Shown here piece by piece: positions 17,503 to 46,421 of a stretch of 64,000 nucleotides of DNA (positions are counted from its first letter, which is position 1; each line of letters begins with the position of its first letter). The stretch is taken from the IMG/VR virus record IMGVR_UViG_3300030202_003189, positions 1-64,000 of that record; one strand, 5' to 3'. Under the pieces are notes generated by a model that saw only the letters and a list, made by a program, of their open reading frames with translations, was not told where the DNA came from and ran no database searches. A program made the position numbers and the translations under genes.

Positions 17503-20500
17503 ATGAAAAATAGGAAATTACTTAACGAATACTATTCTAACTGGAACGATGCATTACTCCTTAACGAACAACAAGTTCCGGGTGGTCCTGGTAACTATGG
17601 AAATGTTTGGGAATTTTGTGGTGTTACACCAGGTCCTCAGGGACAACTGGGGGCTACAGCATTTTCAATAGGACTTAATGCAGGTACTGTTCAATATGGT
17701 GATATTGCTGATGTAGATTATGGTGTTAATGGTTATTACCTGGGTATACCAAACTATTGGGTACCGGAAAAATGTAACGATCAATTATGTACTCAAGCTG
17801 ATGTGGGTAACGAATTTGAAGTTATTATCAAACCAAACCACTATCAAGCTGCAACATATCATCTTAGACTTGTATCCGTTGGACAATCTACACCAACTGT
17901 AACTAACGTCTGTAATTATGGTTCGAACCCACCAGCAACAAACATATATAATTGTCCTCATTATTATAATAACTTTGTAGATGGTAATTGCCTTCCTAGT
18001 CCAGAATATGGATGTACGGACCCGACAGCTACCAACTACCTTCCAACGGCAACAATGGATGATGGGTCTTGTGTCTATCCAATTCCTGGATGTACTGACC
18101 CGGCAGCTAATAACTATAACCCAAATGCCACGGTAGATGACGGAAGTTGTACTTTTACCGATATTTGTCATGGTGAGTTAAGTTGGATGATATGTGACCA
18201 AGGTAATTCCGGATACCCTCCGGGAAGTGGTCCTGTTTGGTCGTCAATGGGTCCTGGAACAGTAGCACCGACCCCAGATGGGTGTTTTCAATGTGATGGT
18301 CAAATGTGTACTGCCGCAGATATAGGACAACCTTTCCAACTTCCAAACTACACTGGAGGTGTGCCAACCACAGCTGTTGGTTTATTAGATTCTATTGCTT
18401 TACCTAAGTATATGCAACCTCAAGATATATATAACGCACAGGCTGCTGTTTGTCCTCCACCACAAGGATGTACTAATCCTCTTGCAACCAATTACGACCC
18501 ACTTGCTGTGGTAGACGATGGAAGTTGTATTATTCCTGGTTGTACAGATGTAAATGCAAACAATTATTTACCAAGTGCAACAATTGATGATGGAAGTTGT
18601 ACTTATGATGTTCTTGGATGTACTGACTCTACCGCCACAAATTACGACCCACTTGCTACCGTAGATGATGGAAGTTGTTATTGGGAAGGATGTACGGACC
18701 CAACTGCAACTAATTACGACCCTAACGCTACCGTAGATGATGGAAGTTGTATTATTCCTGGGTGTACAGACCCAGCAGCGACAAATTATAACCCTAATGC
18801 TACCATAGATGATGGAAGTTGTGTATTCCCAACTGTTGGATGTACCGATCCTACCGCAAGTAATTATAATCCTGTAGCAACAGTAGACGATGGTTCTTGT
18901 TACTGGTTAGGTTGTACCGACCCAGCGGCGACTAATTACGACCCTAACGCCACTCAAGATGACGGTTCTTGTATTTATCCAGTTTATGGTTGTACAGACC
19001 CAGCAGCAACAAACTATAACTCCTTAGCAACAGTAGACGATGGTTCATGTGTTTATCCAATTCCTGGATGTACTGATCCGTTGGCTTTTAATTATGACCC
19101 AAACGCAACAGTGGATGATGGTTCATGTTTATATGATGGTTGTACAGATATAAACGCCACTAATTTTAATCCTAATGCTAACGCAGATTGTTCAGGTGTT
19201 CCAGGTGGTCCTGATACGAGTTGTTGTATATATCCAGTTCCAGGTTGTCCAGACCCTACTGTGGTAGGACCAATTGTTAATACAGGTACACAATTTTGTG
19301 TTAATGGTTGTGAAGTATACGACCCTCTTGCTATTGGATGTCCAGATAATAATGGATTGGTAGTACCGGGTGATACTAGTTGTTGTTGTTTTTTAGGTTG
19401 TACCGACGTAAATGCAACCAATTATGACCCACTTGCTTGTATCGACGATAACTCTTGTCAATTACCTCCTCCAATAAACTGTTCATGTTGTGAAGTAGGT
19501 CAACCTGGTACCATAAGTCAACCAGTAGGGATAATGATTAATGGTTGGACACCGGGTGGTTGTGCTTCCTTGAACTCCGCAACTCTTACAAATTGTGATA
19601 CGGCACAAGCGTTTGACCCAACTGATTGTGAACCAGACTGTACTACTTTTGATTTTTCAAGTGCTACCAATCTACCCAATTCTTTAGGGTCTACCTATAC
19701 CATGTTAAACGATGCTTATAATATGGGTTTACAAAATAGTCAAGCTTATGGGATAATGGATGGAAATAGTACTTTTTGTTACGAATTTTGTGTAGCTGGA
19801 GGTGGAACCCATTGGGCTTGTGATTGTTGTGGGGATATACATGATTGTGACCAAGATACGTATTGGCCAAAACCTTATGGATGTTGGACTTGTCGTGACG
19901 ATAATACTTGTGGTCAACCATCCCCAAGTTGGATGTCAAGTAATATGACTCTTAACTACTATAATAATCAAGCTGATTGTTTAGCCGATGCCCCAGTTAA
20001 TTGTCCTCCAAAACCTAGTTGTGATAATACCCCAGAATTTTGTTCACAAACTCCATCTTTAACTCCAGGAGGTTCATGTTGGATTTGTCATCACCAGACT
20101 GTTTGTTTACCAGTTTATGATTATTTAGAATACGGATCAGGACCTCCAGGGTCAACTGGAACTTATTCCTTTATGATGAATTGGTTAATACCACAAGGAA
20201 CAAACCCACAAACTTATAAAACTCCTCAAGGGAGTGATTTATTCTGTAACGCTCAAGATTGTGTTGCAAACTCTCCATGTACTGAATGGGATACTTGGAA
20301 AGCAGAAGATTGTGGACCACCACCAGGTGGGTGTCCTCCTAATGAAATTTGGTATCCTTACCCTAAATGTGAATGTGGTTTACCTAAGGTGATAGACCCA
20401 GTAGATAAAAAAAGACCTAAAGATAAGGAAAAGGAAAAAGAACTAGACGTTGAAAAAACTGATTCGGATCGTGAAAATAAAGAAACAATAAAGGAAGAAT

Positions 20501-20538
20501 TTAGTCGAATGAAAACTATCTGGAATTATAAGTTATAA
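17503..20538 (+). CDS. 1011-aa Cys-rich GCTD-repeat protein with LLNEQ leader and IKEEFSRMK tail
   Basis: About 13-14 GCTDPxAxNYxPxAxxDDGSC repeats plus Cys modules; no signal peptide. Confidence 0.9.
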   Translation: MKNRKLLNEYYSNWNDALLLNEQQVPGGPGNYGNVWEFCGVTPGPQGQLGATAFSIGLNAGTVQYGDIADVDYGVNGYYLGIPNYWVPEKCNDQLCTQADVGNEFEVIIKPNHYQAATYHLRLVSVGQSTPTVTNVCNYGSNPPATNIYNCPHYYNNFVDGNCLPSPEYGCTDPTATNYLPTATMDDGSCVYPIPGCTDPAANNYNPNATVDDGSCTFTDICHGELSWMICDQGNSGYPPGSGPVWSSMGPGTVAPTPDGCFQCDGQMCTAADIGQPFQLPNYTGGVPTTAVGLLDSIALPKYMQPQDIYNAQAAVCPPPQGCTNPLATNYDPLAVVDDGSCIIPGCTDVNANNYLPSATIDDGSCTYDVLGCTDSTATNYDPLATVDDGSCYWEGCTDPTATNYDPNATVDDGSCIIPGCTDPAATNYNPNATIDDGSCVFPTVGCTDPTASNYNPVATVDDGSCYWLGCTDPAATNYDPNATQDDGSCIYPVYGCTDPAATNYNSLATVDDGSCVYPIPGCTDPLAFNYDPNATVDDGSCLYDGCTDINATNFNPNANADCSGVPGGPDTSCCIYPVPGCPDPTVVGPIVNTGTQFCVNGCEVYDPLAIGCPDNNGLVVPGDTSCCCFLGCTDVNATNYDPLACIDDNSCQLPPPINCSCCEVGQPGTISQPVGIMINGWTPGGCASLNSATLTNCDTAQAFDPTDCEPDCTTFDFSSATNLPNSLGSTYTMLNDAYNMGLQNSQAYGIMDGNSTFCYEFCVAGGGTHWACDCCGDIHDCDQDTYWPKPYGCWTCRDDNTCGQPSPSWMSSNMTLNYYNNQADCLADAPVNCPPKPSCDNTPEFCSQTPSLTPGGSCWICHHQTVCLPVYDYLEYGSGPPGSTGTYSFMMNWLIPQGTNPQTYKTPQGSDLFCNAQDCVANSPCTEWDTWKAEDCGPPPGGCPPNEIWYPYPKCECGLPKVIDPVDKKRPKDKEKEKELDVEKTDSDRENKETIKEEFSRMKTIWNYKL
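18010..19458 (+). repeat. GCTD coding repeat array (about 26-27 aa unit)
   Basis: Counted directly in the translation. Confidence 0.9.
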
Positions 20539-21327: not shown

Positions 21328-21933
21328 ATGGGAAAAAAAATTAGATTAACCGAAACAGAATTAACTAGAATAATCGCAGACCTAGTTAGAGAAGAAACAG
21401 AAAAAAGAAAAGGAAAGAAGGAGGGTCCAACTTCAAGAAAAGACTTAAAAAAACTTAGTAAAAAAGACTGTAAAAAACTAATGAAGTGTATGAATATGGA
21501 CTCTATGGATTCTATAATGAAAGGTTATTCTAAAATGTATAATGAATCCCCTAAATGGGCGAAAGGAAAATCTTTAACACCTTCTGAGTTCAAAATGAGA
21601 ATGGGTGATTTACCACCAGATGAAGATCCTAAACCAGCGGCTTGTATAATTTTAGCAATATTTAGTTGGACTATTGCGGCTTGGGCGTTCGCCACTTGGT
21701 GTGGTTGGGAACACTCTGACTCTAGATTAAAAGAAAATATAAATAGAACTGGAATTTCTAAATCTGGAATTCCAATTTATACATTTAACTATAAAAATGA
21801 CGATACTCTTTGGTCAGGTGCGATGGCACAAGATTTATTAAATATGGGTATGGAAAATGTAGTAAAGACTATGGATAATGGTTATTACTCAGTTAATTAT
21901 AATATGATTGATGTCGACATGACCAGTCTTTAA
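21328..21933 (+). CDS. LxE-leader protein with TM segment and C-terminal peptidase S74 intramolecular chaperone
   Basis: HSDSRLKENI..GIPIYTFNYK..GAMAQDL..GYYSVNY is the S74 signature. Confidence 0.85.
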   Translation: MGKKIRLTETELTRIIADLVREETEKRKGKKEGPTSRKDLKKLSKKDCKKLMKCMNMDSMDSIMKGYSKMYNESPKWAKGKSLTPSEFKMRMGDLPPDEDPKPAACIILAIFSWTIAAWAFATWCGWEHSDSRLKENINRTGISKSGIPIYTFNYKNDDTLWSGAMAQDLLNMGMENVVKTMDNGYYSVNYNMIDVDMTSL

Positions 21934-32170: not shown

Positions 32171-32297
32171 TCTTAAAATTTTTATTATTATTATTTTATA
32201 TGTATTAAATATGCTTTAGATTGTAAAAATTAATTTAACCATTAAAAAAGACTCATTAGTAATCATTTTATTTTTGTTTGATATTTATTTATAAGAT

Positions 32298-32558
32298 ATG
32301 AAAAAACGACGAGTAAATACCAAACTTAAATTGATGTCCATCATTACTGAGAGGATAAGTGACTTTGTGTGTTCAGAAGACGAAGACGCCTTTTTTGGTG
32401 ATGGGGGTGAGAGAGTTAATCAGAAGTTAACAAAGGAAGAATTACAAGAAAGAGTAGAAGAAATAAACATAAATGAGGAAGTTGGATTTGTTAAGGTAAG
32501 GGAAATGAGAAAAATAATTAAACAGTTAATTAAAAAGGGTATAGATGAAGAATATTAA
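32298..32558 (+). CDS. Hypothetical protein (IITE motif)
   Basis: TATTTATA at 32286. Confidence 0.75.
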   Translation: MKKRRVNTKLKLMSIITERISDFVCSEDEDAFFGDGGERVNQKLTKEELQERVEEININEEVGFVKVREMRKIIKQLIKKGIDEEY

Positions 32559-33009
32559 TGAAGAAGTAAAAAGAATGAGGGAATTAATGGGTTTGAATGA
32601 AAATATCCAACATAATAATTTTGCTCAAATGGGGTTAACAAGAAAAACGATTAGTCGTGGTGGAGTGATGTACCAAGAACAAGATATGGTTGACGGTGTT
32701 GATACTTCAGAGGAACCGGAATCTGAATTCGATAAAGAGGTTGAAGCAAGAAAAGATGCTTTTGAAAAAGATGTAATGGACTATAGACAGGAAGTTTCTG
32801 ATAAAATAGAAGATGTGGAAAGTGAAGAAGAAAAGAGACAGGAAGATATAGTAGCCCAAAAAGAGAAAACAGAGGAGGAAAAGAAGAAAAAGGAGGAAGA
32901 GGAACTAGAAAAAAAGGAAGAAGAGAAAAGAAAAAAAGAAGAAGAAGAGTTACGAAAAAAGGAGGAATTAGAAGCTAGGTTAGCTGCTCAGAGAGAAAGA
33001 ACCAAATAA
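32545..33009 (+). CDS. INEEVKRMRELMG-leader protein with E/K coiled coil
   Basis: Leader motif plus EEEKKK-type charged tail. Confidence 0.85.
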   Translation: MKNINEEVKRMRELMGLNENIQHNNFAQMGLTRKTISRGGVMYQEQDMVDGVDTSEEPESEFDKEVEARKDAFEKDVMDYRQEVSDKIEDVESEEEKRQEDIVAQKEKTEEEKKKKEEEELEKKEEEKRKKEEEELRKKEELEARLAAQRERTK

Positions 33010-33020
33010 AAAACAAATCT

Positions 33021-36000
33021 ATGAAAAAATTATTTACATCACTTTTAATATTTTTAACCCTATCCACCAGCGCTCAAAACAGCTGGATTAACATCCAATT
33101 ATTAACAGATAATTACCCAACAGAAACGTCTTGGAACATCACCCCTCCAGGAGGTTATCCTATTATTATTCAAAATGATTCAGCAATGTTACCTAATACC
33201 TTGTATGATACTACTATTGCCATTCAAGGTACAATTGTCGCATCTATTTTTGACCAATATGGTGATGGGTTAAGTGCTTCACAGTGGGGAGGTACTGATG
33301 GTTGGTTTCTTATACAAAATGATTGTCAAGATACAATTATGTATGTAGCGGGTAATTTTGGTGATACTTTAGTTAATACACTACAAATTGCTCCATGCGC
33401 ACCTCCTTCTGGTGGTTGTTTAGATTCATTAGCGACCAATTATGATCCAACAGCTGCTTTTGATGATGGTTCATGTATCTACCCTCCCTGTGCTGGTTTA
33501 GATACATTTTATGTTATAAATTATTGTCAAGGGGCACAAAATAAAGTTCATTATAAATGGTCAAATATGGCTAACCCTAATTGTAGGATGGCCGCGTATA
33601 CGAGGTCCACAGACCCTTATTCTTTAGGGTCACAATGGTACCCTTACCCAGGAAATTTTTCAAATACAGGAATATTATTTAGTAATAGTCAAAACAACAC
33701 AACATATTATTTCTTAGGTATGTTAGCAGATTCTTCTTATACCGATACATTAGTAGTTACAACACAAGAATGTATTCCAGGTTGTACCGACCCAACGGCA
33801 CTAAATTACAATCCTTGGGCAAATTCAGATGATGGTACATGTCAAGCACCACCTGCAAATTGTATAACTGGAGAATCTAATATAGTAGTAACAGTAATGC
33901 CAGACACATACCCAGGGGAGACATCTTGGGAAATAGCAGATACAACCGGAACTGTATTAGCCACATCACCAGCTTACTCTACACCAGGTGTTCCTGTAAT
34001 TACAGAAGTATGTATACCAAACGGTACGGTTATTGAATTTACCTTGTTTGACTCATTCGGTGATGGTTTATGTGGTTCATGTTATGGAGGAGCTGATGGA
34101 GGAGCAGTAGTACAGACCCTTTGTGGTGATACTATATTAGCTATATTACCTGGGAATGCTAATTTTGGAAATGATACTTCTGTAGTATACACAGTGGCTC
34201 CTTGTACACCAAATGCTATATTAGGATGTACAACACCAGGATTTACAGAATATAATCCACAAGCAACAGTAGATGACTCATCTTGTGTAACACCAGTCAT
34301 ATTAGGATGTACTGATATAACTTCACCAGATTACGATTCATTAGCTAACACAATGTCAGTAATACCACAATGTCAATATACATTAGTAATTACGGATGAA
34401 GCCGAAGATGGATGGTTTGGGGCGTGGGTAGGTATATTACAAGACACAACAATATTAGGTCCATTTATGATGGGTCCTCAAGATGGTTATTCAGAAACAT
34501 TTACAATTAGTTTAAGTGCTTTAAGTCCAGTAGAGTTAATGTTCTTTGCACCAGGTAATTCAGCTACCACAGCAAATCAATGTGGTTTCTTTTTAATAGG
34601 TCCTGAAGGGGACACTACCCTATCAGGAGGGACTAATCCTTGGACTGACCCAATGTTACAATTTCCTTATAGATATAATGGGGTACCTTACTGTGGTGAC
34701 TTTTGTACAGATGGTGTTCTTGGTTGTATGGACCCAACAGCCTTAAATTATAATCCATTGGCAAATATGCCTGACAATTGTACACCAGTTGTATTAGGTT
34801 GTACAAATAATTTAGCTTTTAATTATAACCCTTTAGCAAATACAGATGATAGTTCCTGTGTATCAATTATAATTGGATGTATGGACACCACAGCATTCAA
34901 CTTTAACCCAACAGCTAATACAAACGACCCATCTTCATGTATATCAGTAATATTAGGTTGTATGGATGATACAATGTTTAACTACAACGCTGCGGCTAAC
35001 ACCGACGATGGTAGTTGTATACCAGTAGTGTTTGGTTGTACAGATCCATTAGCATTTAACTATGATAGTTTATCTAACACAAATAATGGTACATGTACAC
35101 CAGTCATATTAGGGTGTACGGATGCAACTGCTTTTAATTACAACCCTAACGCAAATACTAATGATTTATCTTGTGTGGCTGTTGTTATTGGTTGTACCGA
35201 TGCGTCGGCTCTTAATTATGATTCATTGGCGAACACAAATAACGGATGTATATACCCAATTTTAGGTTGTACCGACCCTACCGCATTTAATTATAACCCC
35301 AACGCAAATACTAGTGATAGTACGTGTATACCAGTTATTATCGGTTGTACTGACGCAACCGCGTTAAATTATGACTCAACAGCAAATACAAACAACGGTT
35401 GTGTTTATCCTATCTTAGGATGTACCGATGCCACTGCGTTTAATTATAATCCTAACGCAAATGTTAATGATTCTACCTGTGTCCCATTTATATATGGGTG
35501 TACAGATAACACGATGTTTAACTATGACCCAACCGCGAACACAGACAATGGTTCTTGTATAGCGTTTGTTTACGGATGTACGGATAGTACAATGTTTAAC
35601 TATGACCCATTAGCAAATACTAACAATAACACATGTGTACCATTCATCTATGGTTGTACCGACTCCATAGCTTTTAACTATAACCCAGCGGCTAATACGG
35701 ATAATAATACGTGTATTCCAGTATTATCAGGTTGTACCGACTCAATAGCGTTAAATTACAATCCATTGGCTAATACAGACAATGGTAGTTGTATTATACC
35801 ATTATACGGGTGTACAGACTCGACAGCCTTAAATTATAATTCACTCGCAAATACTGATGATGGATCATGTATTTTACCAATTTACGGATGTACGGATAGT
35901 ACAATGTTTAACTATAATCCATTGGCAAATACAAATGATGGTAGTTGTATATCCTTTATTTACGGTTGTACCGACCCAACAATGTTTAACTACGACCCTA

Positions 36001-36809
36001 GTGCAAACTCTGACGATGGGACCTGTATCCAATTTATATATGGATGTACTGATAACACAATGTTTAACTATGACCCAACAGCAAATACCGATAATGGTTC
36101 ATGTGAGCCTTTTATTTATGGATGTACTGATAGTACAATGTTTAATTATGACCCAACAGCAAATACAGATAACGGATCTTGTATATCATTTATTTATGGA
36201 TGTACCGATAATGCGGCACTTAACTTTAATCCTTTAGCGAACACATTAGATAATACGTGTTGTTACATAGGAGGATGTACTGATTCATTGGCAGTAAACT
36301 ATAACCCTAATGCTTGTAATGATGACGGTTCATGTATAACACCAATAGTTGGTTGTACGGATGTTGCGGCTTACAATTATAATCCATTAGCAAATGTATC
36401 AGATTCTGCATCTTGTTTGTATAATGCAGGATGTTATGGAGGACCTGGAATTCCTTATTGGTTAAATGATGGGTGTTACGCTTGGGTAATAAGTGTAGAT
36501 GACTATTGTTGTACTACCGATTGGGATGCGTCATGTATATCAATGTATGATTATTGTCAACAAGGGTGGCCTACTTCAATTGAGGACATATCGGCTCTAG
36601 GGATTGTAGTATACCCTAATCCAACAACAGATATAATAACAATAGAAACAAGGTTAGATATAGAAGTTGAGGTTTACGACATTATGGGTAAACTACTAGT
36701 AAATAAAGATTCTAAACGAGTTGATTTATCAGATTATCCAAATGGGGTCTATAATCTAATAATTAAACATAACGATAAACGATATACAACAAGAGTGATT
36801 AAACAATGA
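33021..36809 (+). CDS. T9SS (type A CTD) substrate with about 26 GCTD repeats
   Basis: Signal peptide ending TSA-Q; three D.YP.ETSW-type domains; C-terminal VYPNP..YDIMGKLL..DLSDYPNGVY..RVIKQ sorting domain. Confidence 0.92.
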   Translation: MKKLFTSLLIFLTLSTSAQNSWINIQLLTDNYPTETSWNITPPGGYPIIIQNDSAMLPNTLYDTTIAIQGTIVASIFDQYGDGLSASQWGGTDGWFLIQNDCQDTIMYVAGNFGDTLVNTLQIAPCAPPSGGCLDSLATNYDPTAAFDDGSCIYPPCAGLDTFYVINYCQGAQNKVHYKWSNMANPNCRMAAYTRSTDPYSLGSQWYPYPGNFSNTGILFSNSQNNTTYYFLGMLADSSYTDTLVVTTQECIPGCTDPTALNYNPWANSDDGTCQAPPANCITGESNIVVTVMPDTYPGETSWEIADTTGTVLATSPAYSTPGVPVITEVCIPNGTVIEFTLFDSFGDGLCGSCYGGADGGAVVQTLCGDTILAILPGNANFGNDTSVVYTVAPCTPNAILGCTTPGFTEYNPQATVDDSSCVTPVILGCTDITSPDYDSLANTMSVIPQCQYTLVITDEAEDGWFGAWVGILQDTTILGPFMMGPQDGYSETFTISLSALSPVELMFFAPGNSATTANQCGFFLIGPEGDTTLSGGTNPWTDPMLQFPYRYNGVPYCGDFCTDGVLGCMDPTALNYNPLANMPDNCTPVVLGCTNNLAFNYNPLANTDDSSCVSIIIGCMDTTAFNFNPTANTNDPSSCISVILGCMDDTMFNYNAAANTDDGSCIPVVFGCTDPLAFNYDSLSNTNNGTCTPVILGCTDATAFNYNPNANTNDLSCVAVVIGCTDASALNYDSLANTNNGCIYPILGCTDPTAFNYNPNANTSDSTCIPVIIGCTDATALNYDSTANTNNGCVYPILGCTDATAFNYNPNANVNDSTCVPFIYGCTDNTMFNYDPTANTDNGSCIAFVYGCTDSTMFNYDPLANTNNNTCVPFIYGCTDSIAFNYNPAANTDNNTCIPVLSGCTDSIALNYNPLANTDNGSCIIPLYGCTDSTALNYNSLANTDDGSCILPIYGCTDSTMFNYNPLANTNDGSCISFIYGCTDPTMFNYDPSANSDDGTCIQFIYGCTDNTMFNYDPTANTDNGSCEPFIYGCTDSTMFNYDPTANTDNGSCISFIYGCTDNAALNFNPLANTLDNTCCYIGGCTDSLAVNYNPNACNDDGSCITPIVGCTDVAAYNYNPLANVSDSASCLYNAGCYGGPGIPYWLNDGCYAWVISVDDYCCTTDWDASCISMYDYCQQGWPTSIEDISALGIVVYPNPTTDIITIETRLDIEVEVYDIMGKLLVNKDSKRVDLSDYPNGVYNLIIKHNDKRYTTRVIKQ
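33415..36416 (+). repeat. GCTD coding repeat array
   Basis: About 26 units counted; dense tandem array from about 34720 to 36416. Confidence 0.9.
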
Positions 36810-37897
36810 GAAAACTGATATTAATAATACTTGCAGTCGTTAGCTTACAAGTTAATGCACAAGATAAGAAGATAGATTTTAAGAATATATTTAAGTTTGG
36901 AACAGTGTATGGTGCAATTAATGGAGGAACATCATTATCCGATCAAGACGAATATTCTGTTATAGACGGATTACAAACATCTGTTAATAAAACCCCTTAT
37001 GATTACTCAGTACTATTTGGAATAAGAAAGATTAAGAAATTTGGTCACGAAGACAAAGAAAGATTCAAGAATGGAACTGAAAATTCTTTCTCAGATGCCG
37101 CAACTCTTGGTAGATGGAATAATAAAATTGAGTTTTTATTTGAGGGTGAATATAAAAGACAGGAAGGAGAGACTTATCTAGACCAACATCACTTTATTAG
37201 ATACGTTGGCACAGATGGGTGTACTGAAAAGTTATGTTGGAAACATTATATTATAAAGATAGAGTATCTTGAAGATGGGTTCGCTGATATAAAATATTTC
37301 GAGGCTTCCGAAAGACTCACCTATAAACCTACACAGGTAGAAAATTTAACATTTAATTTTGGTGCCGCTCAAAGACTAGCAGAACCTTATGGTTATGACC
37401 CATTAGCAGAATGGTTATTATCTAATGGAAATATACATTATACTCATTTAGCCATACAAGAAGGTTATACAATGGAATTCGATGGTAATGGAGGGGTTGA
37501 GTATTTCGACCCATCTGGTAATTCAGTGGCTACAAGTCCAGAAGTTTGGGAAGCTGTTGTTATACCAACAGTATTAGCAGATTATACTGAAAAGAAACGT
37601 AATGAATTAGATAACACAATACAACACTCATTTGTAGTAGGATTTGATTACTACAAATACGAAAAGAAAAGTTGGTTACACGCTTGGGGTAATGTTATGC
37701 CCTACCATTATGATGCAGGTGGGGAGTTTAGTTATCACAAATTTAATGGTGGTCAGTGGTTAGATTATTCGGCAGGATTGGTATATGGTCATTGGTTTAA
37801 TAAAAATTTGGGTGTATTTATAGAAGGAACTTATAACAAGTATTGGAATAGAGAATGGCACGGATTTAGTGCTGGGATAAATTATAGAGTATTTTAG
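36806..37897 (+). CDS. Putative outer-membrane beta-barrel protein
   Basis: Signal peptide ending VNA-Q, alternating aromatic strands, C-terminal NYRVF. Confidence 0.75.
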   Translation: MRKLILIILAVVSLQVNAQDKKIDFKNIFKFGTVYGAINGGTSLSDQDEYSVIDGLQTSVNKTPYDYSVLFGIRKIKKFGHEDKERFKNGTENSFSDAATLGRWNNKIEFLFEGEYKRQEGETYLDQHHFIRYVGTDGCTEKLCWKHYIIKIEYLEDGFADIKYFEASERLTYKPTQVENLTFNFGAAQRLAEPYGYDPLAEWLLSNGNIHYTHLAIQEGYTMEFDGNGGVEYFDPSGNSVATSPEVWEAVVIPTVLADYTEKKRNELDNTIQHSFVVGFDYYKYEKKSWLHAWGNVMPYHYDAGGEFSYHKFNGGQWLDYSAGLVYGHWFNKNLGVFIEGTYNKYWNREWHGFSAGINYRVF

Positions 37898-37899
37898 AG

Positions 37900-38181
37900 A
37901 TGGCAAAAGAATTAAACGAAGACACAGGATTTCAGGTAAGTATAAAAACCTTATTGGGTATTGGGGCTGGAATGGCCACAGTTATTAGCATGTGGTTTAT
38001 GTTACAAGCGGATATTGATGAAGCAAAACTATTACCAGAACCAACACCACCAGAAATTAGTCGTATGGAATTTGATATGAAAGACCAATTGGTTCGTCAA
38101 ACTATTATGGACACTCAAAAAGATGTGGAAGAAATAAAGAAAACTCTAGAAAAGATAGAAGATAAGTTGTACGGTAGATAA
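37900..38181 (+). CDS. Single-TM protein with C-terminal coiled coil
   Basis: TM at residues about 13-33; QKDVEEIKKTLEKIE heptads. Confidence 0.8.
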   Translation: MAKELNEDTGFQVSIKTLLGIGAGMATVISMWFMLQADIDEAKLLPEPTPPEISRMEFDMKDQLVRQTIMDTQKDVEEIKKTLEKIEDKLYGR

Positions 38182-38188
38182 TATTAAA

Positions 38189-38530
38189 ATGTGGAATAAA
38201 AACATATGTTTAACATCTCGTAAAACACTACTGTTAATTGTTGTGATATTATTCAGTACTTTGGTATTGGCAAGCGTTTGGTCTGGTTCTGAAAATATAA
38301 TAGAAGAAGGTATCGAAGTTCCCGAAGAAATAGAAGGAATGTGGATACCTACAGAAGAAGATATTGCATATCAAGACAGTATGTATCAAATAATACAAAA
38401 TACTCAAAAAGATATAACAGAAATTAAAGACGATATAGTCTATATTTTAGAGAGATTAGATTATCCAGACGGTACTTGGGATAGTATTAGATATGTTAAA
38501 GGTGGTAAAATAGATCAGAGAATAAATTAG
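38189..38530 (+). CDS. Single-TM/secreted protein with coiled coil
   Basis: TM then QKDITEIKDDIVYILE, similar to the previous ORF. Confidence 0.8.
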   Translation: MWNKNICLTSRKTLLLIVVILFSTLVLASVWSGSENIIEEGIEVPEEIEGMWIPTEEDIAYQDSMYQIIQNTQKDITEIKDDIVYILERLDYPDGTWDSIRYVKGGKIDQRIN

Positions 38531-38532
38531 TT

Positions 38533-38910
38533 ATGAAAAAAGATTATGCAGTTTGGAAAATATTTGGAGGATACCTATTAGTGTTATTATTAATGATATT
38601 ATCTAGTACCGTGAACGCTCAAACATATACATGTGATGAAGATATATGTGTAGTTGAATTTAATGCGAGTTGGAACGCAAAAAATAATGTAGAGTGGTTG
38701 GATAAGTTAACAGACGTGGGGACAAAAAGAATCTTAATTGACAAGGGTTCTTGGCAAAAAGATTTTAGTATAGTAGTTACACCGACCATTATAATATTTG
38801 TGGAGGGTAAAGAAACAAAAAGATACCAAGCAAATATTATGATGGAGATGGAAGCTAAACAAACTGATGTACAAGATAAGATAGACGAAATTATAATGGA
38901 ATTATTCTAA
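38533..38910 (+). CDS. Exported thioredoxin-fold-like protein lacking canonical CxxC
   Basis: Signal ending VNA-Q; CVVEFNASWN, IVVTPTIIIFVEGKE..RY. Confidence 0.65.
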   Translation: MKKDYAVWKIFGGYLLVLLLMILSSTVNAQTYTCDEDICVVEFNASWNAKNNVEWLDKLTDVGTKRILIDKGSWQKDFSIVVTPTIIIFVEGKETKRYQANIMMEMEAKQTDVQDKIDEIIMELF

Positions 38911-39681
38911 ATGAAAAAATTATTAACAGAACAAGGAGCAACACAAGCATGGACGTGTTGTTGTAATGGTCAATCACATGAGATAGGTGGAATACAAACA
39001 CACTTCTATGCAAATGGGAATACTTGTAATAGTCAGCCTGGAGGGTGTGCGAACCAAACACTACAACCAAACGGATCATCAAATCAGATACCATGGAATT
39101 TACTAAATCCCAATTCAAATAGTGGTTATGGTCAAGGGGCAGGAACTTCTTTTCCGGGTACTGGACAACTTAATGGACAAACCCCTATTGGTATATGGAG
39201 TGTTAATAATACTTTTAGTAGTACAAATGGGGGTAATGATTTTGGAGAACCTTACATTTGGTTTACTCAAAATTTAATGGATCCTAACGATCCTTCAAAA
39301 TGTCTTCCAAACCCAGCTAATTGTAGAACAGAGACACCTCCACCACCTCCACCTCCGCCACAACACAAAGGTTGTATAGATCCAAACGCATTAAATGACG
39401 GAGAATGTTGTAATGGAAACCCAAATTGTACTCCTGTTGCTCATAGTCAGCAATGTTGTAAATATGAACGGATTGACGATCCTATAGTGAACGAATGTTG
39501 TAAGTGGTGTCAAACAGGTCCCTTCATAGGAAACCCTCCACAGGGATGTAAAGATTGGATGTGTACTGACCCGCAATGGTTAGCCCATAATTGTCCTGGT
39601 ATAGAACCAATAGAACCAAAAGATAAAGACAAATTTTTAGAACTTAGGGAAGAAATAAAGAGAATTAAGGAGTTATTGTAG
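38911..39681 (+). CDS. Cys-rich protein with LLTEQ leader and LREEIKRIKELL tail
   Basis: Leader/tail motifs, P7 linker, one degenerate GCIDPNALN repeat. Confidence 0.85.
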   Translation: MKKLLTEQGATQAWTCCCNGQSHEIGGIQTHFYANGNTCNSQPGGCANQTLQPNGSSNQIPWNLLNPNSNSGYGQGAGTSFPGTGQLNGQTPIGIWSVNNTFSSTNGGNDFGEPYIWFTQNLMDPNDPSKCLPNPANCRTETPPPPPPPPQHKGCIDPNALNDGECCNGNPNCTPVAHSQQCCKYERIDDPIVNECCKWCQTGPFIGNPPQGCKDWMCTDPQWLAHNCPGIEPIEPKDKDKFLELREEIKRIKELL

Positions 39682-39682
39682 T

Positions 39683-40291
39683 ATGTTAAAATTTTTATTA
39701 GCAACAATAATAAGTCTATCAGCAAGTGTCAGAGAACCTAGACAAGTTCCTACAGCTCCATTTGATTATGAACTTTCATATAAGATAGAGAATACCTACA
39801 AAGGATTCGAAGGATCATTCCAACATGATTATGAAAGAGAAGATGGAGAGATGTTTAACGACATTAAAAGTAGTATAAATTATACTCAAAATCTTAAACT
39901 CGGAAATGTACACCTCCCAAACCATGCAATAATCTTCAAAGAAGACTACAACCAAATAACGTCAAAAGAAATATATCAATTTAATAGTGATATGAGATTT
40001 CAATTTCACGGATTATCTATAGGGTATGGTATGACATGGGATTTAGAGGATAAATATCTTTATCACCCATCAGTAGGGTTTACTAAACAGATGACATTAG
40101 GTAATTGGGAGTTAGAGACGGAAAACGATGTGTACTTTACTAAGGACATAACATACCAAACAGAGGGAAGTGTTTCTTATAACATAACAAAAAATGTTGG
40201 TTTGGGAATGTCAGGAAATTATATAAAAACATTAGATAATTATGATTACTCGGCGAAAGTAATATTAACAATAAAATTAACACAAAATTAA
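39683..40291 (+). CDS. Putative small outer-membrane beta-barrel protein
   Basis: Hydrophobic N-terminus; alternating strands (LSIGYGM, WELETE, VGLGMSG, AKVILTIKL). Confidence 0.6.
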   Translation: MLKFLLATIISLSASVREPRQVPTAPFDYELSYKIENTYKGFEGSFQHDYEREDGEMFNDIKSSINYTQNLKLGNVHLPNHAIIFKEDYNQITSKEIYQFNSDMRFQFHGLSIGYGMTWDLEDKYLYHPSVGFTKQMTLGNWELETENDVYFTKDITYQTEGSVSYNITKNVGLGMSGNYIKTLDNYDYSAKVILTIKLTQN

Positions 40292-40302
40292 AAAAAACAA
40301 AA

Positions 40303-40494
40303 ATGGATTCAATTACATGTTATATTAAATGCTATGGAGGTTATCTATTAGCAGTAGGAGCAGGATGTACATTTGGTACGAGCTTATTATGGGGTACAGC
40401 GTTATTAGCCGCGGCTGGATATTGGGGATGGCAAGTTATTTGTCCTTGTAAACCATGTAAAAGTGGTGAAGGGGCTTGTTGTAAAACAAAGTAA
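40303..40494 (+). CDS. Small two-TM protein with Cys-rich tail
   Basis: CPCKPC..CCK C-terminus. Confidence 0.75.
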   Translation: MDSITCYIKCYGGYLLAVGAGCTFGTSLLWGTALLAAAGYWGWQVICPCKPCKSGEGACCKTK

Positions 40495-40495
40495 G

Positions 40496-40699
40496 ATGAC
40501 GTTAGCGAGAATGTTAATAACCTTTGGTGTGCTATTAATGTTTACTTGGTTGATATATCTTATATTCTTTGAAGAGGTTGCGGGAACTACCCGTGACCTT
40601 CTCTTTATTTTAGTTGGGGGATTTTTAAGTTCCTTCCAAAACATTATAGATTATTGGTTTAAGAAAGAGAAGAAAGAACAAAGGGAATGTAAAGAATGA
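40496..40699 (+). CDS. Two-TM holin-like membrane protein
   Basis: Start at MTLARMLITF; two TM helices, IIDYWF, charged tail. Confidence 0.55.
   Translation: MTLARMLITFGVLLMFTWLIYLIFFEEVAGTTRDLLFILVGGFLSSFQNIIDYWFKKEKKEQRECKE

Positions 40700-41156: not shown

Positions 41157-41157
<1 letters not shown>
40714..41157 (+). CDS. LxE-leader hydrophilic protein
   Basis: QLLQIITEK leader; DFDKNQDG loop. Confidence 0.8.
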
Positions 41158-41717
<560 letters not shown>

Positions 41718-41751: not shown

Positions 41752-41965
41752 ATACCCCTTGTGATGGGGAAAAACCATATGTCTCTCCTTCAGGGGTTGA
41801 TTCTTCTTTTTTAGTATTGGCCTCCTGTTGTATCTTAGCGTCTTCTAACAATTTTAACTGTTCATCCATCTGTTGTTTCTGGTATTTTTTAAGTTGAGCT
41901 TTTAGTTGGGTAGTCCTATTCTTAGATTTACTTTTCTGGTTTTTTCTATGTCTACTTTTTGGCAT
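41750..41965 (-). CDS. Small basic hypothetical protein
   Basis: MPKSRHRKNQK..., ends at the terminator. Confidence 0.75.
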   Translation of the reverse strand: MPKSRHRKNQKSKSKNRTTQLKAQLKKYQKQQMDEQLKLLEDAKIQQEANTKKEESTPEGETYGFSPSQGV

Positions 41966-42031
41966 TTTAATATATTTATAATTATAACATGTTTATTTAC
42001 TCAAATATACATAAAAAAAATTAAAAATAAA

Positions 42032-42487
42032 ATGGCACGTATTAAAAAATTAAACGAAAGACAGTTAACCAATCTTGTTAGAAAAATGGTTATTGAAGAA
42101 CAATTGACAGACCAAGGTGGCACTGAAGTTTTATCGGCACAAGACAAAGAATTAAGTTGGGGTAAACTAAGGGCTTATCTAAAGGACTTGTACACTGACT
42201 ATAAAAATAAGTTTGCCGATGTACAACCAAATGAATTTAATGAAGTTATGATGGTTTTAGATGGGGCAATTGATTTGGCGAAAGTTAAAAACATTAATAA
42301 TAAAGGGGCCTCAGTTATCTCCCAATATCTAAAACAACACGTTAAACCTTTAGAGAGACAATACGATGCGGCACAATCAGATAGTACACCGGAAGCACCG
42401 CCAGCACCAAAATATGGTGAAGTAAATGAATCAAGAGGAAATAGAAGTAACTATAATCGACTTTATAAAAGACTAAAGAGAAAATAG
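42032..42487 (+). CDS. LxE-leader hypothetical protein
   Basis: True start likely MARIKKLNERQLTNLVRKMVIEEQ at 42032. Confidence 0.85.
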   Translation: MARIKKLNERQLTNLVRKMVIEEQLTDQGGTEVLSAQDKELSWGKLRAYLKDLYTDYKNKFADVQPNEFNEVMMVLDGAIDLAKVKNINNKGASVISQYLKQHVKPLERQYDAAQSDSTPEAPPAPKYGEVNESRGNRSNYNRLYKRLKRK

Positions 42488-42511: not shown

Positions 42512-42536
42512 AAACCCCATTACTTGGGGTTTTTTT
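42512..42536 (+). terminator. Intrinsic terminator
   Basis: AAACCCCA-TTACT-TGGGGTTTTTTT. Confidence 0.85.
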
Positions 42537-42563: not shown

Positions 42564-45500
42564 ATGAGAAATCACAATAAAGAAAATGTCAGTGTTGGGT
42601 CGTACACGTTCCCTATAGAAGACCTCGATAAAAGGATATTAATCGAAGCTTTTAAGTTATATGATAGTAGTGTGGATGATCCAGAACGCATAGCGTCAGT
42701 AATACATGAATCATGGTGGAAAGAACTTGACAATATGTTAAGACTCTATGGTAAAAAAGGAATGGGTTTTTACTATGGTTATATGATGTATCTAAACCAA
42801 AACAAAAGTGGTGAGGAATTAAAAAATGGAGATATTAATCCAGTTGTTGCCCCAGGATATAAAGTACAAGAACAAGAAGGTGCTGGAACACACAGAGTTG
42901 GAGAACTTGATGGTGTGCAAATGATAGAGATTGAGGGTGTGTTTGGGTTGGCGTCCTATGGAGGTGACAGATGGAAGGGATCAGCAGATGGTAAAACTAA
43001 AATGGAATGGTCAATAATCTTTGACGATATGGGAGAAATGAAAGTCGGTCCTACATTTATTTATGATTATAAACAATATGAGTTGGAACCGGATGAGATT
43101 GATTACTGGAGTATAGGTGGAAGTAATACAGAAAATCTTTTAGCGGTTTTATTAAGTTTTTATAGAACATATGGCGATACTAATCTTATTACAGAAGAAA
43201 TTGATACGGAAATAAAATATGCTATTGATCAACAATACCGTAATGACCCAGAAGAAAGAAAAAACGTATTAGATTCTTTAGAGTTTGACCCTTATAAGGA
43301 TAGAGATTTTTATGTGGGTGGTTATAAAGAATTACAATTTGATGTTGAGCCTAGAACGTTAGTTAATAAATTAGCACAAGAAAAAGGTTACGGAAAAGTA
43401 GTAGATGAAATGCTAGGTGGGAACGGCACAGCTTATTTCACGTCAAAAGGAAATGTTATTAAAATAACTGGAGATAAAAGCGAATATGAAACCGCTAATG
43501 TAATTAAAGGAAAACAAAACAAATATATTGCCGATGTTTTCGAAAGTGGAAAATTAGATTCTTCTCATATTATTAGTGGTGACGCTTATATTATTATTAT
43601 GGAAGAATTAGGATTACCTAAAAGAATATCAGAAATATTTGAAGATTGTTGTTGTGGGGTTAATAAACCAATCTATATTGAATACAACGAAACTCCGGCA
43701 GTTATTCACCCTCCAGTTAATGGAAAAGAAGAATGTGAAAAATTACACAAAAATCTATTAATGATTAGACAAGAATTAACACAACATGGTATTAGTTGGA
43801 GTGATATTGGTATAGATAATTTAGGGATGAAAAATGGAAAGTTGGCTCTTCTTGATTTGGGAGAAACAACGGGTGGTATAGATACTGGGCAAACAATTGA
43901 ATTAAATGAACAAGAACAACTAGAATTAGAATTACCAACACCAATTGGAGAATTTGAATTTCCTGCAGGGTATGAAGATGTACACACCGAGACAGGTGAA
44001 GAGTATGCTGGCGCGGAACAAGAAACCGTAGATGCAATTAGAGATGAAGTAAGAGATGAATCTGTAACATATCTTTTTAAGAAGTGGGATAAAACAGGTG
44101 TAAATTTTGATGACCTAAAATTAATAGGTATTCCAACAAACAATTCTTTAATTAAAATCATGTTAGCGAAGAGATACCTTAAAAATACAATGAGACCTAT
44201 TCCAGTGTCCTATACTTTCGATTGTGAAGACCTTTCAAAAATGTTTATAAAAGACGCTAGAGATTATAGTGTAGATTATATTGAGCAATTTTTATGTGGA
44301 GAACACGAATGGGACGACTACGATAATTGGTATGATCATGATTGGTATGATGGAATGTCTGACGATTTAGATGATAGAAATTGGAAAACTATAATGAATA
44401 TTCTGGGTGTAACAACTCAAGAAGAAGCAGAAAATCTAGTCAATAATAGACCTCAAACGGAGGAAGAAGAAAGAATTGCCGAGGAAAAAGAAGAGGTAAT
44501 TAGTGAAATTAGAAGCAGTATATTGTGGACACATAATGACGAGGCAGAATGGAGAACCAAACGTGACATGGGTGATGACGTTATTGATAAATTGGGAGAA
44601 CATTTTAATAACGATGGAAAATTAAGCCGAGATGACAATGGAAAGTGGTCTTGGACAATTGAGGATAACTTATTAAATTGGTTGGGGGACGATATGTGGG
44701 ATAATATCGACCTATATGAATATCATCCAGATTATGCAGGTTATACTTTAGAAGATTGGTTAACGGATTGGTCTGTAGGACCTATACAAGATGCGATATT
44801 TGAATCACTTATGTTAGAAGAATTTACCTTTGAAGACTATGATTATGGTAAAAGAGGAGACCTACTAGAACCAAACACAAGATTCTTTGATAATTATTAT
44901 CATCCTAATTACGATATCAATGACGGACTCTATGATAGATTGGGTGAAATTGAACATTATTCATCGGCGAGCGCAACACCATTACTTAAAGAAGGATTAT
45001 TCGAACAATCCGACGCATTTGATAAGGGAGAACTTATAATATTAAAACACGTCCATAAAAATTTTAGCAAGAAAGAACTTGAAGATTTAGTATCGGAAAC
45101 ACCAATATATGGTGGTGCATCAAAAAAATGGACTACTCTCATGAAAATGTTTGGTATACCAACATCCTCAATGGAACAAGCCGCCATCTCAACTCAATAT
45201 GCCAAATACGCTTTAGATAATTGGAATGAGGAGGGTAATTATACCATGGAAAACCCAATAAGAGATATGATAAGTTGGTGGGATATTAGTCGTGACGAAA
45301 CAGGGTCACAGGTTGAATATAAATCAGGTGGTACAGATGTACTTGCCTTTGACGACGACGACGCTGAGGAGAGGGGAGATAATGAATTTCATGACTGGGA
45401 TGGGGATATGGAGACCGTTGATTGGGGAGATTATGAGGCTTATGATTCTGAAGTAAGAGAAACAGAACCAACAGGGAAATATCCAGAGATCCCTAAAATA

Positions 45501-46421
45501 TCGGAAGGGGTTGCTGGTGACCAAGAAAAACACACAGGTGAACAAGGAGGGTTTTTTACTCTAGATGGAAGTGATAACATAGGTAATACCGATTTATATA
45601 AAGGTGATGGTTTTGACATTATTCACCAACATAGAGGTAATGTGCACCTGTCCGACATCTCACCGGAAGAGAGTGAAACATCAATACCAAAAGGAAGTAA
45701 AAAAATTAAAAAGACCGTACTTAAACCAAGACTTGATAAAGGACCATTTAACATACCAGTACCTATGAAAGAACATTATGAGGATGTAGAAAGTAATCCG
45801 GATCTTAATCCAGAGGTAGAGGAAGGAGATGTTATTGAGCTTTTATATATGGATGATCCATATTCCATCCCTATAAAAACAAAAGGAGTCGTTATGGGAT
45901 TTGAAGGTAAACCTGGGGATTTTGCTTATAAAATTCTAGTGAATTGGATTTTGGGACCAGAAAAGTTAACTCCTATGGCTCTTCTACCGGATGCCGATAT
46001 ATACAGATTCCCAAAAAAGAAAAAGGAGGGGATAAATGAGCAGTGGAAAAAACCCTACAAAGACCCAAAGGCCGTTGTAAATGGAAAAGAGATTGACTTA
46101 GACGTAGCAGATACAGAGTTTCTAAAACAAAAAGGAATGATGTATAAAACTTCTTATCCAAGAAATAGAGGTATGTTATTTATTTGGGATGACATAGTTC
46201 CAATATCTATGTGGATGAAAAATACTTACCTTCCTTTGGATATTGTTTATATGGTAGATGGTGAAGTGGTTGATTATGATAAAGACGTACAACCTTGTGA
46301 TAAACAACAATGTGAGACATACGGAGACGTTAATGCCAATCAGGTAATAGAACTTCTCAGTGGAGGAGTAGATAATTATAATATATCAATTGGAGACCAA
46401 ATTGAGTTAATGGATGTATAA
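42564..46421 (+). CDS. 1285-aa polyprotein: protein-kinase-like domain, acidic domains, DUF4314-like and DUF192 domains
   Basis: GGNGTAY/VIK/SDIGIDN/LLDLG kinase motifs; GDVIELLYMDDP..KGVV (DUF4314-like); DVADT..KGMM..GMLF..MWMKNTYLPLDIV..VIEL (DUF192); LxE linkers. Confidence 0.85.
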   Translation: MRNHNKENVSVGSYTFPIEDLDKRILIEAFKLYDSSVDDPERIASVIHESWWKELDNMLRLYGKKGMGFYYGYMMYLNQNKSGEELKNGDINPVVAPGYKVQEQEGAGTHRVGELDGVQMIEIEGVFGLASYGGDRWKGSADGKTKMEWSIIFDDMGEMKVGPTFIYDYKQYELEPDEIDYWSIGGSNTENLLAVLLSFYRTYGDTNLITEEIDTEIKYAIDQQYRNDPEERKNVLDSLEFDPYKDRDFYVGGYKELQFDVEPRTLVNKLAQEKGYGKVVDEMLGGNGTAYFTSKGNVIKITGDKSEYETANVIKGKQNKYIADVFESGKLDSSHIISGDAYIIIMEELGLPKRISEIFEDCCCGVNKPIYIEYNETPAVIHPPVNGKEECEKLHKNLLMIRQELTQHGISWSDIGIDNLGMKNGKLALLDLGETTGGIDTGQTIELNEQEQLELELPTPIGEFEFPAGYEDVHTETGEEYAGAEQETVDAIRDEVRDESVTYLFKKWDKTGVNFDDLKLIGIPTNNSLIKIMLAKRYLKNTMRPIPVSYTFDCEDLSKMFIKDARDYSVDYIEQFLCGEHEWDDYDNWYDHDWYDGMSDDLDDRNWKTIMNILGVTTQEEAENLVNNRPQTEEEERIAEEKEEVISEIRSSILWTHNDEAEWRTKRDMGDDVIDKLGEHFNNDGKLSRDDNGKWSWTIEDNLLNWLGDDMWDNIDLYEYHPDYAGYTLEDWLTDWSVGPIQDAIFESLMLEEFTFEDYDYGKRGDLLEPNTRFFDNYYHPNYDINDGLYDRLGEIEHYSSASATPLLKEGLFEQSDAFDKGELIILKHVHKNFSKKELEDLVSETPIYGGASKKWTTLMKMFGIPTSSMEQAAISTQYAKYALDNWNEEGNYTMENPIRDMISWWDISRDETGSQVEYKSGGTDVLAFDDDDAEERGDNEFHDWDGDMETVDWGDYEAYDSEVRETEPTGKYPEIPKISEGVAGDQEKHTGEQGGFFTLDGSDNIGNTDLYKGDGFDIIHQHRGNVHLSDISPEESETSIPKGSKKIKKTVLKPRLDKGPFNIPVPMKEHYEDVESNPDLNPEVEEGDVIELLYMDDPYSIPIKTKGVVMGFEGKPGDFAYKILVNWILGPEKLTPMALLPDADIYRFPKKKKEGINEQWKKPYKDPKAVVNGKEIDLDVADTEFLKQKGMMYKTSYPRNRGMLFIWDDIVPISMWMKNTYLPLDIVYMVDGEVVDYDKDVQPCDKQQCETYGDVNANQVIELLSGGVDNYNISIGDQIELMDV

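Follow-up and report, generated by a model that had tools for sequence, protein, structure and literature searches.

This analysis concerns a set of envelope genes, here called A to E, in the DNA of a virus. The window, meaning the whole stretch that was analysed, is 64,000 nucleotides in length and is the start (positions 1 to 64,000) of the IMG/VR virus record IMGVR_UViG_3300030202_003189. The complete record is 231,285 bp long and is rated about 70% complete. The window encodes a T4-type large terminase (60430-62199) as well as a ClpB-like ATPase and a glutamine-synthetase-like protein. A megablast search with the 30-45 kb region against deposited phages gave no match, and the phage is thus without a close deposited relative. 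Since homologues of the window genes sit on marine contigs of up to about 300 kb, the source is a marine jumbo phage. Gene A encodes a cargo-like protein of the type IX secretion system (T9SS), and B, C, D, and E follow it in that order. The features of the five open reading frames (ORFs) are as follows.

33021-36809, plus strand: A, whole ORF, 1262 amino acids (aa) with 75 Cys residues.
33021..33074, plus strand: A, predicted Sec signal peptide, aa 1-18, cut before Gln19 (direct reading and a hydrophobicity heuristic).
33075..34724, plus strand: A, N-terminal beta-sandwich array, aa 19-568, with four single Cys-pair repeats interspersed (AlphaFold2 model).
34725..36431, plus strand: A, 22 tandem repeats of 25-26 aa, 'GCTDxxAxNYNPxANTDDGSC', aa 569-1137.
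36432..36608, plus strand: A, Cys-rich segment WVISVDDYCCxxxWDxxC, aa 1138-1196, in which the W, C, and D positions do not vary among 47 homologues.
36609..36809, plus strand: A, type A T9SS C-terminal sorting domain, aa 1197-1262 and the stop codon (TIGR04183 and PF18962).
36806..37897, plus strand: B, 12-stranded outer-membrane beta-barrel with a signal peptide and a C-terminal Phe (model and alignment).
37900..38181, plus strand: C, 93 aa, with a single membrane helix, a Pro linker, and a coiled coil; orthologous to a lysis-cassette protein of small phages.
38189..38530, plus strand: D, 113-aa paralogue of C (30% identical), present in 9 of 80 loci.
38533..38910, plus strand: E, 125 aa, exported thioredoxin-fold protein lacking a CXXC motif (profile search); orthologue of a lysis-cassette protein.

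The initial annotation, made from the letters alone, had described A as a type A T9SS cargo with a signal peptide, about 26 repeats, and an intact sorting domain, and all sequence features agree with this. On inspection and by a hydrophobicity rule, the predicted signal peptide has classical n-, h-, and c-regions with an A|Q cleavage site. All 60 of the 60 homologues compared start with MKK, a Leu-rich stretch, and (G/S/A)Q. The C-terminal tail scores 46.8 bits with TIGR04183 (cut-off 23) and 45.7-51.1 bits with PF18962 (cut-off 27). It matches the type A model and no other C-terminal domain (CTD) model, and it is the sole match of this kind in the 231-kb record. Known cargo proteins with a type A CTD include the gingipain RgpB and RemA of F. 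johnsoniae. A shares with such cargo a predicted signal peptide, the modular body of beta-sandwiches and repeats, and a sorting domain scoring above the cut-offs. It differs from them in being encoded by a lytic-type jumbo phage, in being linked to three phage-specific envelope genes, and in that the sorting domain is only about 35 aa long in many of its relatives.

The N-terminal part of about 550 aa was modelled by AlphaFold2 with a pLDDT of 69.5 as an all-beta string of beta-sandwich domains. Two of these domains (aa 19-132 and 283-400) are paralogous to each other (34% identity, E=7e-18). In a Foldseek search, the model resembled the surface glycan-binding protein SGBP-B, fibronectin type III (FN3) arrays, and GhpA, the grappling-hook protein of Aureispira. 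The matches in the AlphaFold database (AFDB) were bacterial T9SS cargo proteins and diatom proteins, and the likeness is at the level of the general fold. A ligand was sought from this model and the attempt was abandoned, as the Foldseek matches were generic beta-sandwich arrays with TM-scores below 0.25. A PDB sequence search with A gave no match, and the non-repeat domains of A did not match the tail-fibre-like proteins of this genome; their only match in the genome is an exported 434-aa protein encoded at 199561-200865.

The Cys-pair repeats total about 26, of which four are scattered in the N-terminal part and 22 are in tandem. The array is old at the DNA level, with 69% matches among the repeats. 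Arrays 45-65% identical to these repeats were found in 102 of 301 Flavobacteriales genomes, in giant ORFs of about 1000-7500 aa; most of these genomes are 1-2 Mb in size. In a sample of 301 genomes taken across the phylum, only six had matches. One host protein of 3648 aa carries both the repeats and a PF18962 domain, and its gene lies in a housekeeping neighbourhood. Thus, the repeats of A are of host origin. A is therefore either copied from a family of T9SS surface proteins of the host or imitates it, whereas B, C, and E are genes of phages. The repeat match also narrows the likely hosts to marine Flavobacteriales with small genomes. Two Bacteroidota metagenome-assembled genomes (MAGs) into which related phage contigs had been binned have 42 and 15 PF18962 matches. 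The host Cys-pair repeat is covered by no Pfam family, and several giant repeat ORFs of up to about 7500 aa can be present in one host genome of 1-2 Mb (e.g., L188:1891-12837 and L187:4951-10098). The same 26-aa repeat was seen in three more proteins of the phage, encoded at 17503-20538 in the window and at 172625-174217 and 203415-206612 in the genome. These three lack both a signal peptide and a sorting domain.

Nearly all of the 120 closest homologues of A have a PF18962 domain, and their contigs reach about 300 kb. The homologues vary from 626 to 1465 aa, have 5 to 25 repeats and several unrelated types of N-terminal domains, and all have signal peptides. Among 47 complete tails, a PF18962 match was obtained for 20. 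The other 27 (e.g., in loci L012, L018, L021, L023, and L025) are about 35 aa long, read 'ITDLLGRPTK..LFYIYxDGTVERKLIK', and lack the first half of the domain. The short-tailed homologues are shorter proteins with fewer repeats, and they keep the Cys-rich 'WVISVDDYCC' segment.

B had been annotated as a barrel-like outer-membrane protein ending in Phe, and the structural model bears this out. The protein has a signal peptide, an even number (12) of antiparallel membrane strands, and a C-terminal aromatic residue (F363) that is present in at least 90% of the homologues. A conserved insert of about 78 aa is found at aa 193-270. The model has middling confidence, and what it matches in fold are generic barrels with 12 strands, which scored best. 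In a metagenome protein collection, B has 3395 homologues at E<=0.001, and at least 399 IMG/VR stretches, mostly from marine samples, encode a relative. No Pfam family, including PorP_SprF (PF11751), was matched by B at E<=0.1, and a profile of B had no match among the PDB sequences. Known pairs of a T9SS cargo and a cognate barrel are SprB/SprF and the type B CTD proteins with their PorP-family partners. A and B are likewise a cargo gene beside a dedicated barrel gene, but A has a tail of type A rather than type B and B lacks a PF11751 match. Thus, B was rejected as a PorP/SprF-type partner. It was also rejected as a PorV, which is a FadL-like 14-stranded shuttle, because B has 12 strands in the model and its best matches are 12-stranded. 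Another idea is that B conducts solutes, for example as a Tsx-like channel for nucleosides or a KdgM-like one for oligosaccharides, with E as a periplasmic binding partner in a nutrient-uptake module that would supply the replicating phage; this is very unlikely.

Some homologues of B (in L018, L029, L031, L033, L035, L044, L066, and L079) have a lipobox-like N-terminus, 'xxC(A/S)xPKKCCxQ', in place of the plain signal peptide, and one homologue of E (in L082) has the same. These may be lipoprotein variants, judging from the N-termini. I looked for a link between the lipobox variant of B and the tail type of A and found none. In many relatives (L012, L021, L023, L025, L033, L044, L067, and others), a giant ORF of 2400-3300 aa (phrog_32588, function unknown) lies directly upstream of B.

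The initial annotation of C and D as proteins with a transmembrane helix and a coiled coil holds, as both have a single membrane helix together with a Pro-rich linker and a coiled coil. C is only 93 aa long; its C-terminal part is heptad-like and charged, and its predicted orientation is ambiguous by charge. C occurs in more than 590 IMG/VR stretches, again mostly from marine samples. E was likewise correctly taken for an exported thioredoxin-fold protein, since it has a signal peptide and its profile matched 194 thioredoxins in the PDB (best 2vim, E=6e-9). It shares with thioredoxin and DsbA oxidoreductases the fold and the cis-Pro region (VxPT), but the alignment to thioredoxin revealed a five-residue deletion exactly at WCGPC. 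In place of this motif, 'FNAxWN' was found in 25 of 25 aligned homologues. Because E and all of these homologues lack CXXC, E is not a disulfide catalyst. Thus, its proposed role as a disulfide helper for A has to be abandoned. For B, C, and D, no useful match came from Pfam, NCBIfam, or PHROGs.

Are these genes really phage genes? One possibility named at the outset is that a host fragment was misassembled into a viral contig, and the host-like repeats and sorting domain of A could be taken in its favour. However, these four genes recur in hundreds of independent assemblies, where the phage genes on either side of them differ. Furthermore, the junction from A to B (36462-37861) is crossed by assembly-graph contigs from two runs with zero mismatches and an even depth of 12-17, and by a run from another study (36698-36924). 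The junction upstream of A is reached by a contig (31939-33036) that overlaps a contig at 33007-33301. In a pattern scan of one genome per species (185,579 species), close relatives of B were found on just seven contigs, all in MAGs whose taxonomy is mixed and implausible (Parvibaculum, Nitrosopelagicus, Rickettsiales, Flavobacteriales, and others). This is the usual signature of wrongly binned phage contigs. In hidden Markov model (HMM) searches of the 301 Flavobacteriales genomes, B was found in 2 and C in 4, and the matches examined were on phage-like contigs. Distant relatives of B at 25-26% identity exist, one of them on an ordinary bacterial contig. It is clear that B, C, and E are phage genes and that B and C are essentially absent from the 301 Flavobacteriales genomes. 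Conserved synteny and the assembly-graph contigs refute misassembly for practical purposes, leaving it next to no probability, and the cassette of A is phage DNA as initially annotated.

To define the extent of the conserved module, two sets of loci were used. The B-anchored set comprises 80 loci kept from 399 IMG/VR stretches and 57-80% identical in B. The C-anchored set, which is independent of the first, was drawn from more than 590 stretches and includes 38 loci with at least 6 kb on each side of C. By tblastn, all 80 B-anchored loci encode B, 78 encode C, 74 encode E, 60 encode A (many of the loci being truncated), 9 encode D, and 5 encode H, a small gene downstream of E. In contrast, the other genes downstream of E (F, G, I, and J onward) and the six genes upstream of A are absent from all of the 80 loci. 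Of the 38 well-flanked C-anchored loci, all encode B, 36 encode E, and 36 encode A. The order of the genes is permuted: the window has A-B-C-D-E, and most relatives have B-C-(D)-E-(0-6 genes)-A. B-C-(D)-E is nearly always contiguous, A lies on either side with up to about six genes between, and the flanking genes differ between loci. This co-occurrence in 36-38 of 38 loci despite the permuted order indicates that the module is composed of A, B, C, and E, with D in some loci. The initial annotation had extended the cassette over 33021-40699; this limit was too wide, as F, G, H, I, and the later genes do not belong to it, H being present in only five loci. Its proposal that A has a barrel partner of its own, on the other hand, is in line with the co-conservation of A with the phage-specific B on hundreds of contigs, in contrast to the disulfide helper. 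B and C are 57-91% identical across the lineage, while neighbouring genes are beyond tblastn detection. B and C are among the most conserved genes of the lineage. Two loci (L164 and L173) have B and C followed by a 136-aa small barrel (family f15), with E and A not detected by tblastn. In many relatives, three tandem paralogues of about 140 aa follow A.

Where else do C and E occur? I found C-like and E-like genes on a 9.4-kb phage-like contig in a Flavobacteriales genome and on 13 IMG/VR contigs, i.e., at 14 loci of small phages. The C-like proteins are 49% identical to C (hhalign 99.5%) and the E-like proteins 30% identical to E (hhalign 99.2%). The order at the 14 loci is C-like, E-like, endolysin, a small ORF, and holin. 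The holin belongs to phrog_3427 (E=2e-16). In most of the loci, an M15 peptidase (phrog_894) serves as the endolysin, while an amidase (phrog_822, E=8e-58) is at the same position in L193 and four loci of the same layout. This non-orthologous replacement of the endolysin at one position marks the locus as a lysis cassette. One of these phages, a 35.5-kb record rated 100% complete, has neither B nor a PF18962 match. Since the holin and the endolysin are accounted for, C and E occupy the slots filled by spanins in other Gram-negative phages. C and E are thus lysis-cassette genes. Orthologues of C and E exist in small phages having neither A nor B, so C, D, and E did not arise as accessories for A. 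In the jumbo lineage, the module sometimes adjoins lysis genes; L053, for example, has B, C, E, A, an endolysin-like gene (f24), and a holin gene (f50). A holin homologue is within the flanks of 15 of 160 loci, and an M15 endolysin is in 12 of 38.

Two-component spanins are exemplified by Rz/Rz1 of lambda. C has the general build of an i-spanin, with an N-terminal membrane helix followed by a coiled coil, but it is short. As with spanin genes, C and E are adjacent and slightly overlapping beside the endolysin and holin genes of small phages. In contrast, E has a thioredoxin fold and an ordinary signal peptide and is unlike any o-spanin, i.e., a short Pro-rich lipoprotein with a lipobox; the window E has an A|Q signal peptide, and 'xxCAxxKKCCxQ' is found in some homologues only. 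The jumbo lineage adds the barrel B to the pair. Neither C nor E matched a spanin in the PHROG and sequence libraries. In Bacteroidota phages, where the outer-membrane step of lysis is a missing piece, the pair is a candidate for it.

On these grounds, I tentatively favour the reading that A, B, C, and E form an envelope module acting on the cell surface and on lysis late in infection, a possibility given somewhat less than an even chance. Proteins of the phage would then be present in each layer of the flavobacterial envelope, from the inner membrane through the periplasm and outer membrane to the surface. A would pass the inner membrane via Sec and fold its about 37 Cys pairs in the periplasm with host enzymes. 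The host T9SS would recognise the type A CTD and move A to the cell surface, where it would probably be attached. B would be inserted by the host barrel assembly machinery (BAM), and its conserved loop domain is probably surface-exposed. C (and D) would be anchored in the inner membrane by the single helix, with the coiled coil assumed to be periplasmic, and E would be a periplasmic, redox-inactive thioredoxin-fold protein. C and E are an older pair, coming from phage lysis cassettes. Since C and E come from such cassettes and B-C-E is nearly always contiguous, a chain from C to E to B across the envelope is favoured, which would join or time the outer-membrane lysis step late in infection. 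A would be the variable outward part and would change what the infected cell surface binds. Therefore, the module probably controls the surface and the bursting of the infected cell rather than merely displaying a filament. As B and C are widespread in marine samples, the module is probably at work in a large share of the infections that strike planktonic Flavobacteriales, a group with a major part in breaking down carbon from algae.

Several points weigh against a role of the module in lysis and at the surface. No homologue of the holin or the M15 endolysin is near the module here, the sole endolysin-like gene found being at 229845-230447, and the lysis genes are not adjacent in most loci of the jumbo lineage. 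The periplasmic part of C (about 58 aa) and E (about 95 aa) look short for spanning the periplasm. The window E has no lipobox, and the charges leave the topology of C ambiguous. B and C are conserved to a degree not usually seen in genes for lysis or exclusion. The linkage of A is looser than that within B-C-E, as about six genes at most can separate A from them. Finally, the 27 short tails lacking a PF18962 match suggest that T9SS export of A may not be universal in the lineage.

Could the module serve display only? In this reading, which extends the initial one and is rather unlikely, A is displayed as a Cys-rich filament, B is its anchor or partner, and C, D, and E are helpers; the purpose would be receptor masking, superinfection exclusion, protection of progeny from debris, aggregation, or avoidance of grazing. 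A has all the sequence features of T9SS cargo and is always found with B. The outer domains and the repeat number of A are variable while B and C are constant, as expected of a part facing an arms race. Receptor-blocking phage barrels are known, such as Lom of lambda, which binds LamB as cited in a preprint (bioRxiv 10.64898/2026.10.24.761521). Phage resistance in flavobacteria is reported to map to gliding and T9SS genes, making T9SS surface proteins plausible receptors. However, E without CXXC cannot catalyse disulfide formation, and C and E occur inside lysis cassettes without A and B, which points to a different or additional role. Moreover, genes for exclusion tend to be accessory and to evolve fast, unlike the highly conserved B and C.

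It is also conceivable, though unlikely, that two separate functions lie side by side. B, C, and E would then be an outer-membrane lysis device of a Bacteroidota type, i.e., a functional spanin analogue with a barrel anchor. A would be a separate auxiliary gene taken from the host, and over a long infection its product would maintain a surface protein of the host or stand in for it. This agrees with the contiguity of B-C-(D)-E, with the position of A on either side and the genes in between, and with the lysis-cassette nature of C and E. In addition, homologues in hosts are numerous for A and almost lacking for B, C, and E. On the other hand, A accompanies B, C, and E in 36 of 38 loci although the genes have been rearranged, which is hard to explain without a functional link. 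The two loci having B and C with no detectable A or E indicate that the pairing rules are not simple.

The most far-reaching form of the envelope-module reading is quite unlikely. In that form, A would be a host-mimicking Cys-repeat adhesin exported via the T9SS and coupled through B to the lysis pair C/E, so that events at the surface are tied to lysis. If true, such surface events, for example contact with other host cells or with further phages, would have a physical connection to when lysis happens or how it is carried out. It would also be the first use of the T9SS by a phage and a new class of lysis proteins in the spanin position. Literature searches found no earlier phage-encoded T9SS cargo and no spanin-like pair in flavobacterial phages.

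Remodelling of the envelope and surface display by phages are known in themselves. A survey of huge phages reported 1,603 barrels in 1,303 phages and mentions the T9SS zero times (bioRxiv 10.64898/2026.10.24.761521, October 2026). B resembles these barrels, Lom of lambda, and the cyanophage Phage_OMP (PF24653), for which envelope remodelling was proposed, in having a signal peptide and a barrel. It differs in being locked to a T9SS cargo and two lysis-cassette genes. The same preprint describes sortase B and its substrates, which display phage proteins on Gram-positive cells. In those modules of gut huge phages, a phage protein likewise carries a host surface-sorting signal. However, they anchor proteins to the Gram-positive wall with a sortase of the phage, whereas only the cargo is encoded here and the host T9SS would be used. 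The T9SS cargo would be new among these, and the lysis-cassette proteins are possibly a new class.

The genes following E and lying outside the conserved module are listed below.

38911..39681, plus strand: F, Cys/Pro-rich protein without a signal peptide, with C-terminal 'EEIKRIKELL'.
39683..40291, plus strand: G, small KdgM/DUF481-like barrel candidate (an Atlas lead).
40303-40494, plus strand: H, lineage-specific small membrane protein, in 5 of 80 loci, near A.
40463-40699, plus strand: I, lineage-specific small membrane protein matching phrog_1544 (function unknown, E=2e-7).

F, G, and H had no useful match in Pfam, NCBIfam, or PHROGs. The sole close relative of G in IMG/VR sits in a different context. 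I was considered as the counterpart of f14, a small membrane protein following the module in relatives, and this was dismissed because the two have no similarity. F is one of five proteins in this genome with a terminal 'E(E/Q)(F/L)xRMKxL' motif. The helical motif, E(E/Q)(F/L)xRMKxL(I/M/W) in full, is at the extreme C- or N-terminus of mostly Cys-rich proteins without a signal peptide. Its carriers are encoded at 17503-20538, 32545-33009, 38911-39681 (F), and 41157-41717 in the window and at 65442-67079 and 203415-206612 in the genome. Similar N-terminal helices are on the products of 41906-42487 and of 21328-21933, the latter being ejection-protein-like. The motif may be a packaging or targeting tag.

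With regard to transcription, none of the sequencing runs listed for the region was an RNA run, and scans for sigma-70 and TAnnTTTG promoters gave counts at the chance level only. A Bacteroidota-type -7 motif (TATTTTTG) is at 32269-32276, about 22 nt upstream of the ORF starting at 32298. A perfect 8-bp hairpin with T-runs on both strands lies at 42512-42532, after the last gene of the co-directional block. The hairpin and the -7 motif may delimit a transcription unit of about 10 kb, although the overall motif counts are at the chance level.

A second cluster of exported proteins was found outside the window, at 199251-202526 of the genome (L190:3252-6527). It includes the 434-aa protein mentioned above, which has a signal peptide, a domain homologous to aa 283-400 of A (E=1e-6), a WCGPC thioredoxin motif, and a short CTD-like tail, 'IFDMLGRE...GMYII..KIFKTK'. 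This is the sole WCGPC thioredoxin in the genome. A 263-aa Cys-rich protein in the cluster has the same kind of tail, a 163-aa protein is small-barrel-like, and a 124-aa protein combines a signal peptide and a coiled coil with a membrane helix at its C-terminus. A Pfam scan of the cluster was uninformative. Thus, this phage twice pairs secreted proteins that have a CTD-like tail with a barrel, which supports the envelope-module reading.

Two further proteins are encoded shortly downstream in the window. A 186-aa protein (41157-41717), one of the motif carriers, has a proline-dominated stretch of about 30 residues, and a 1285-aa protein (42564-46421) has a DUF192 domain at its end (E=3e-24).

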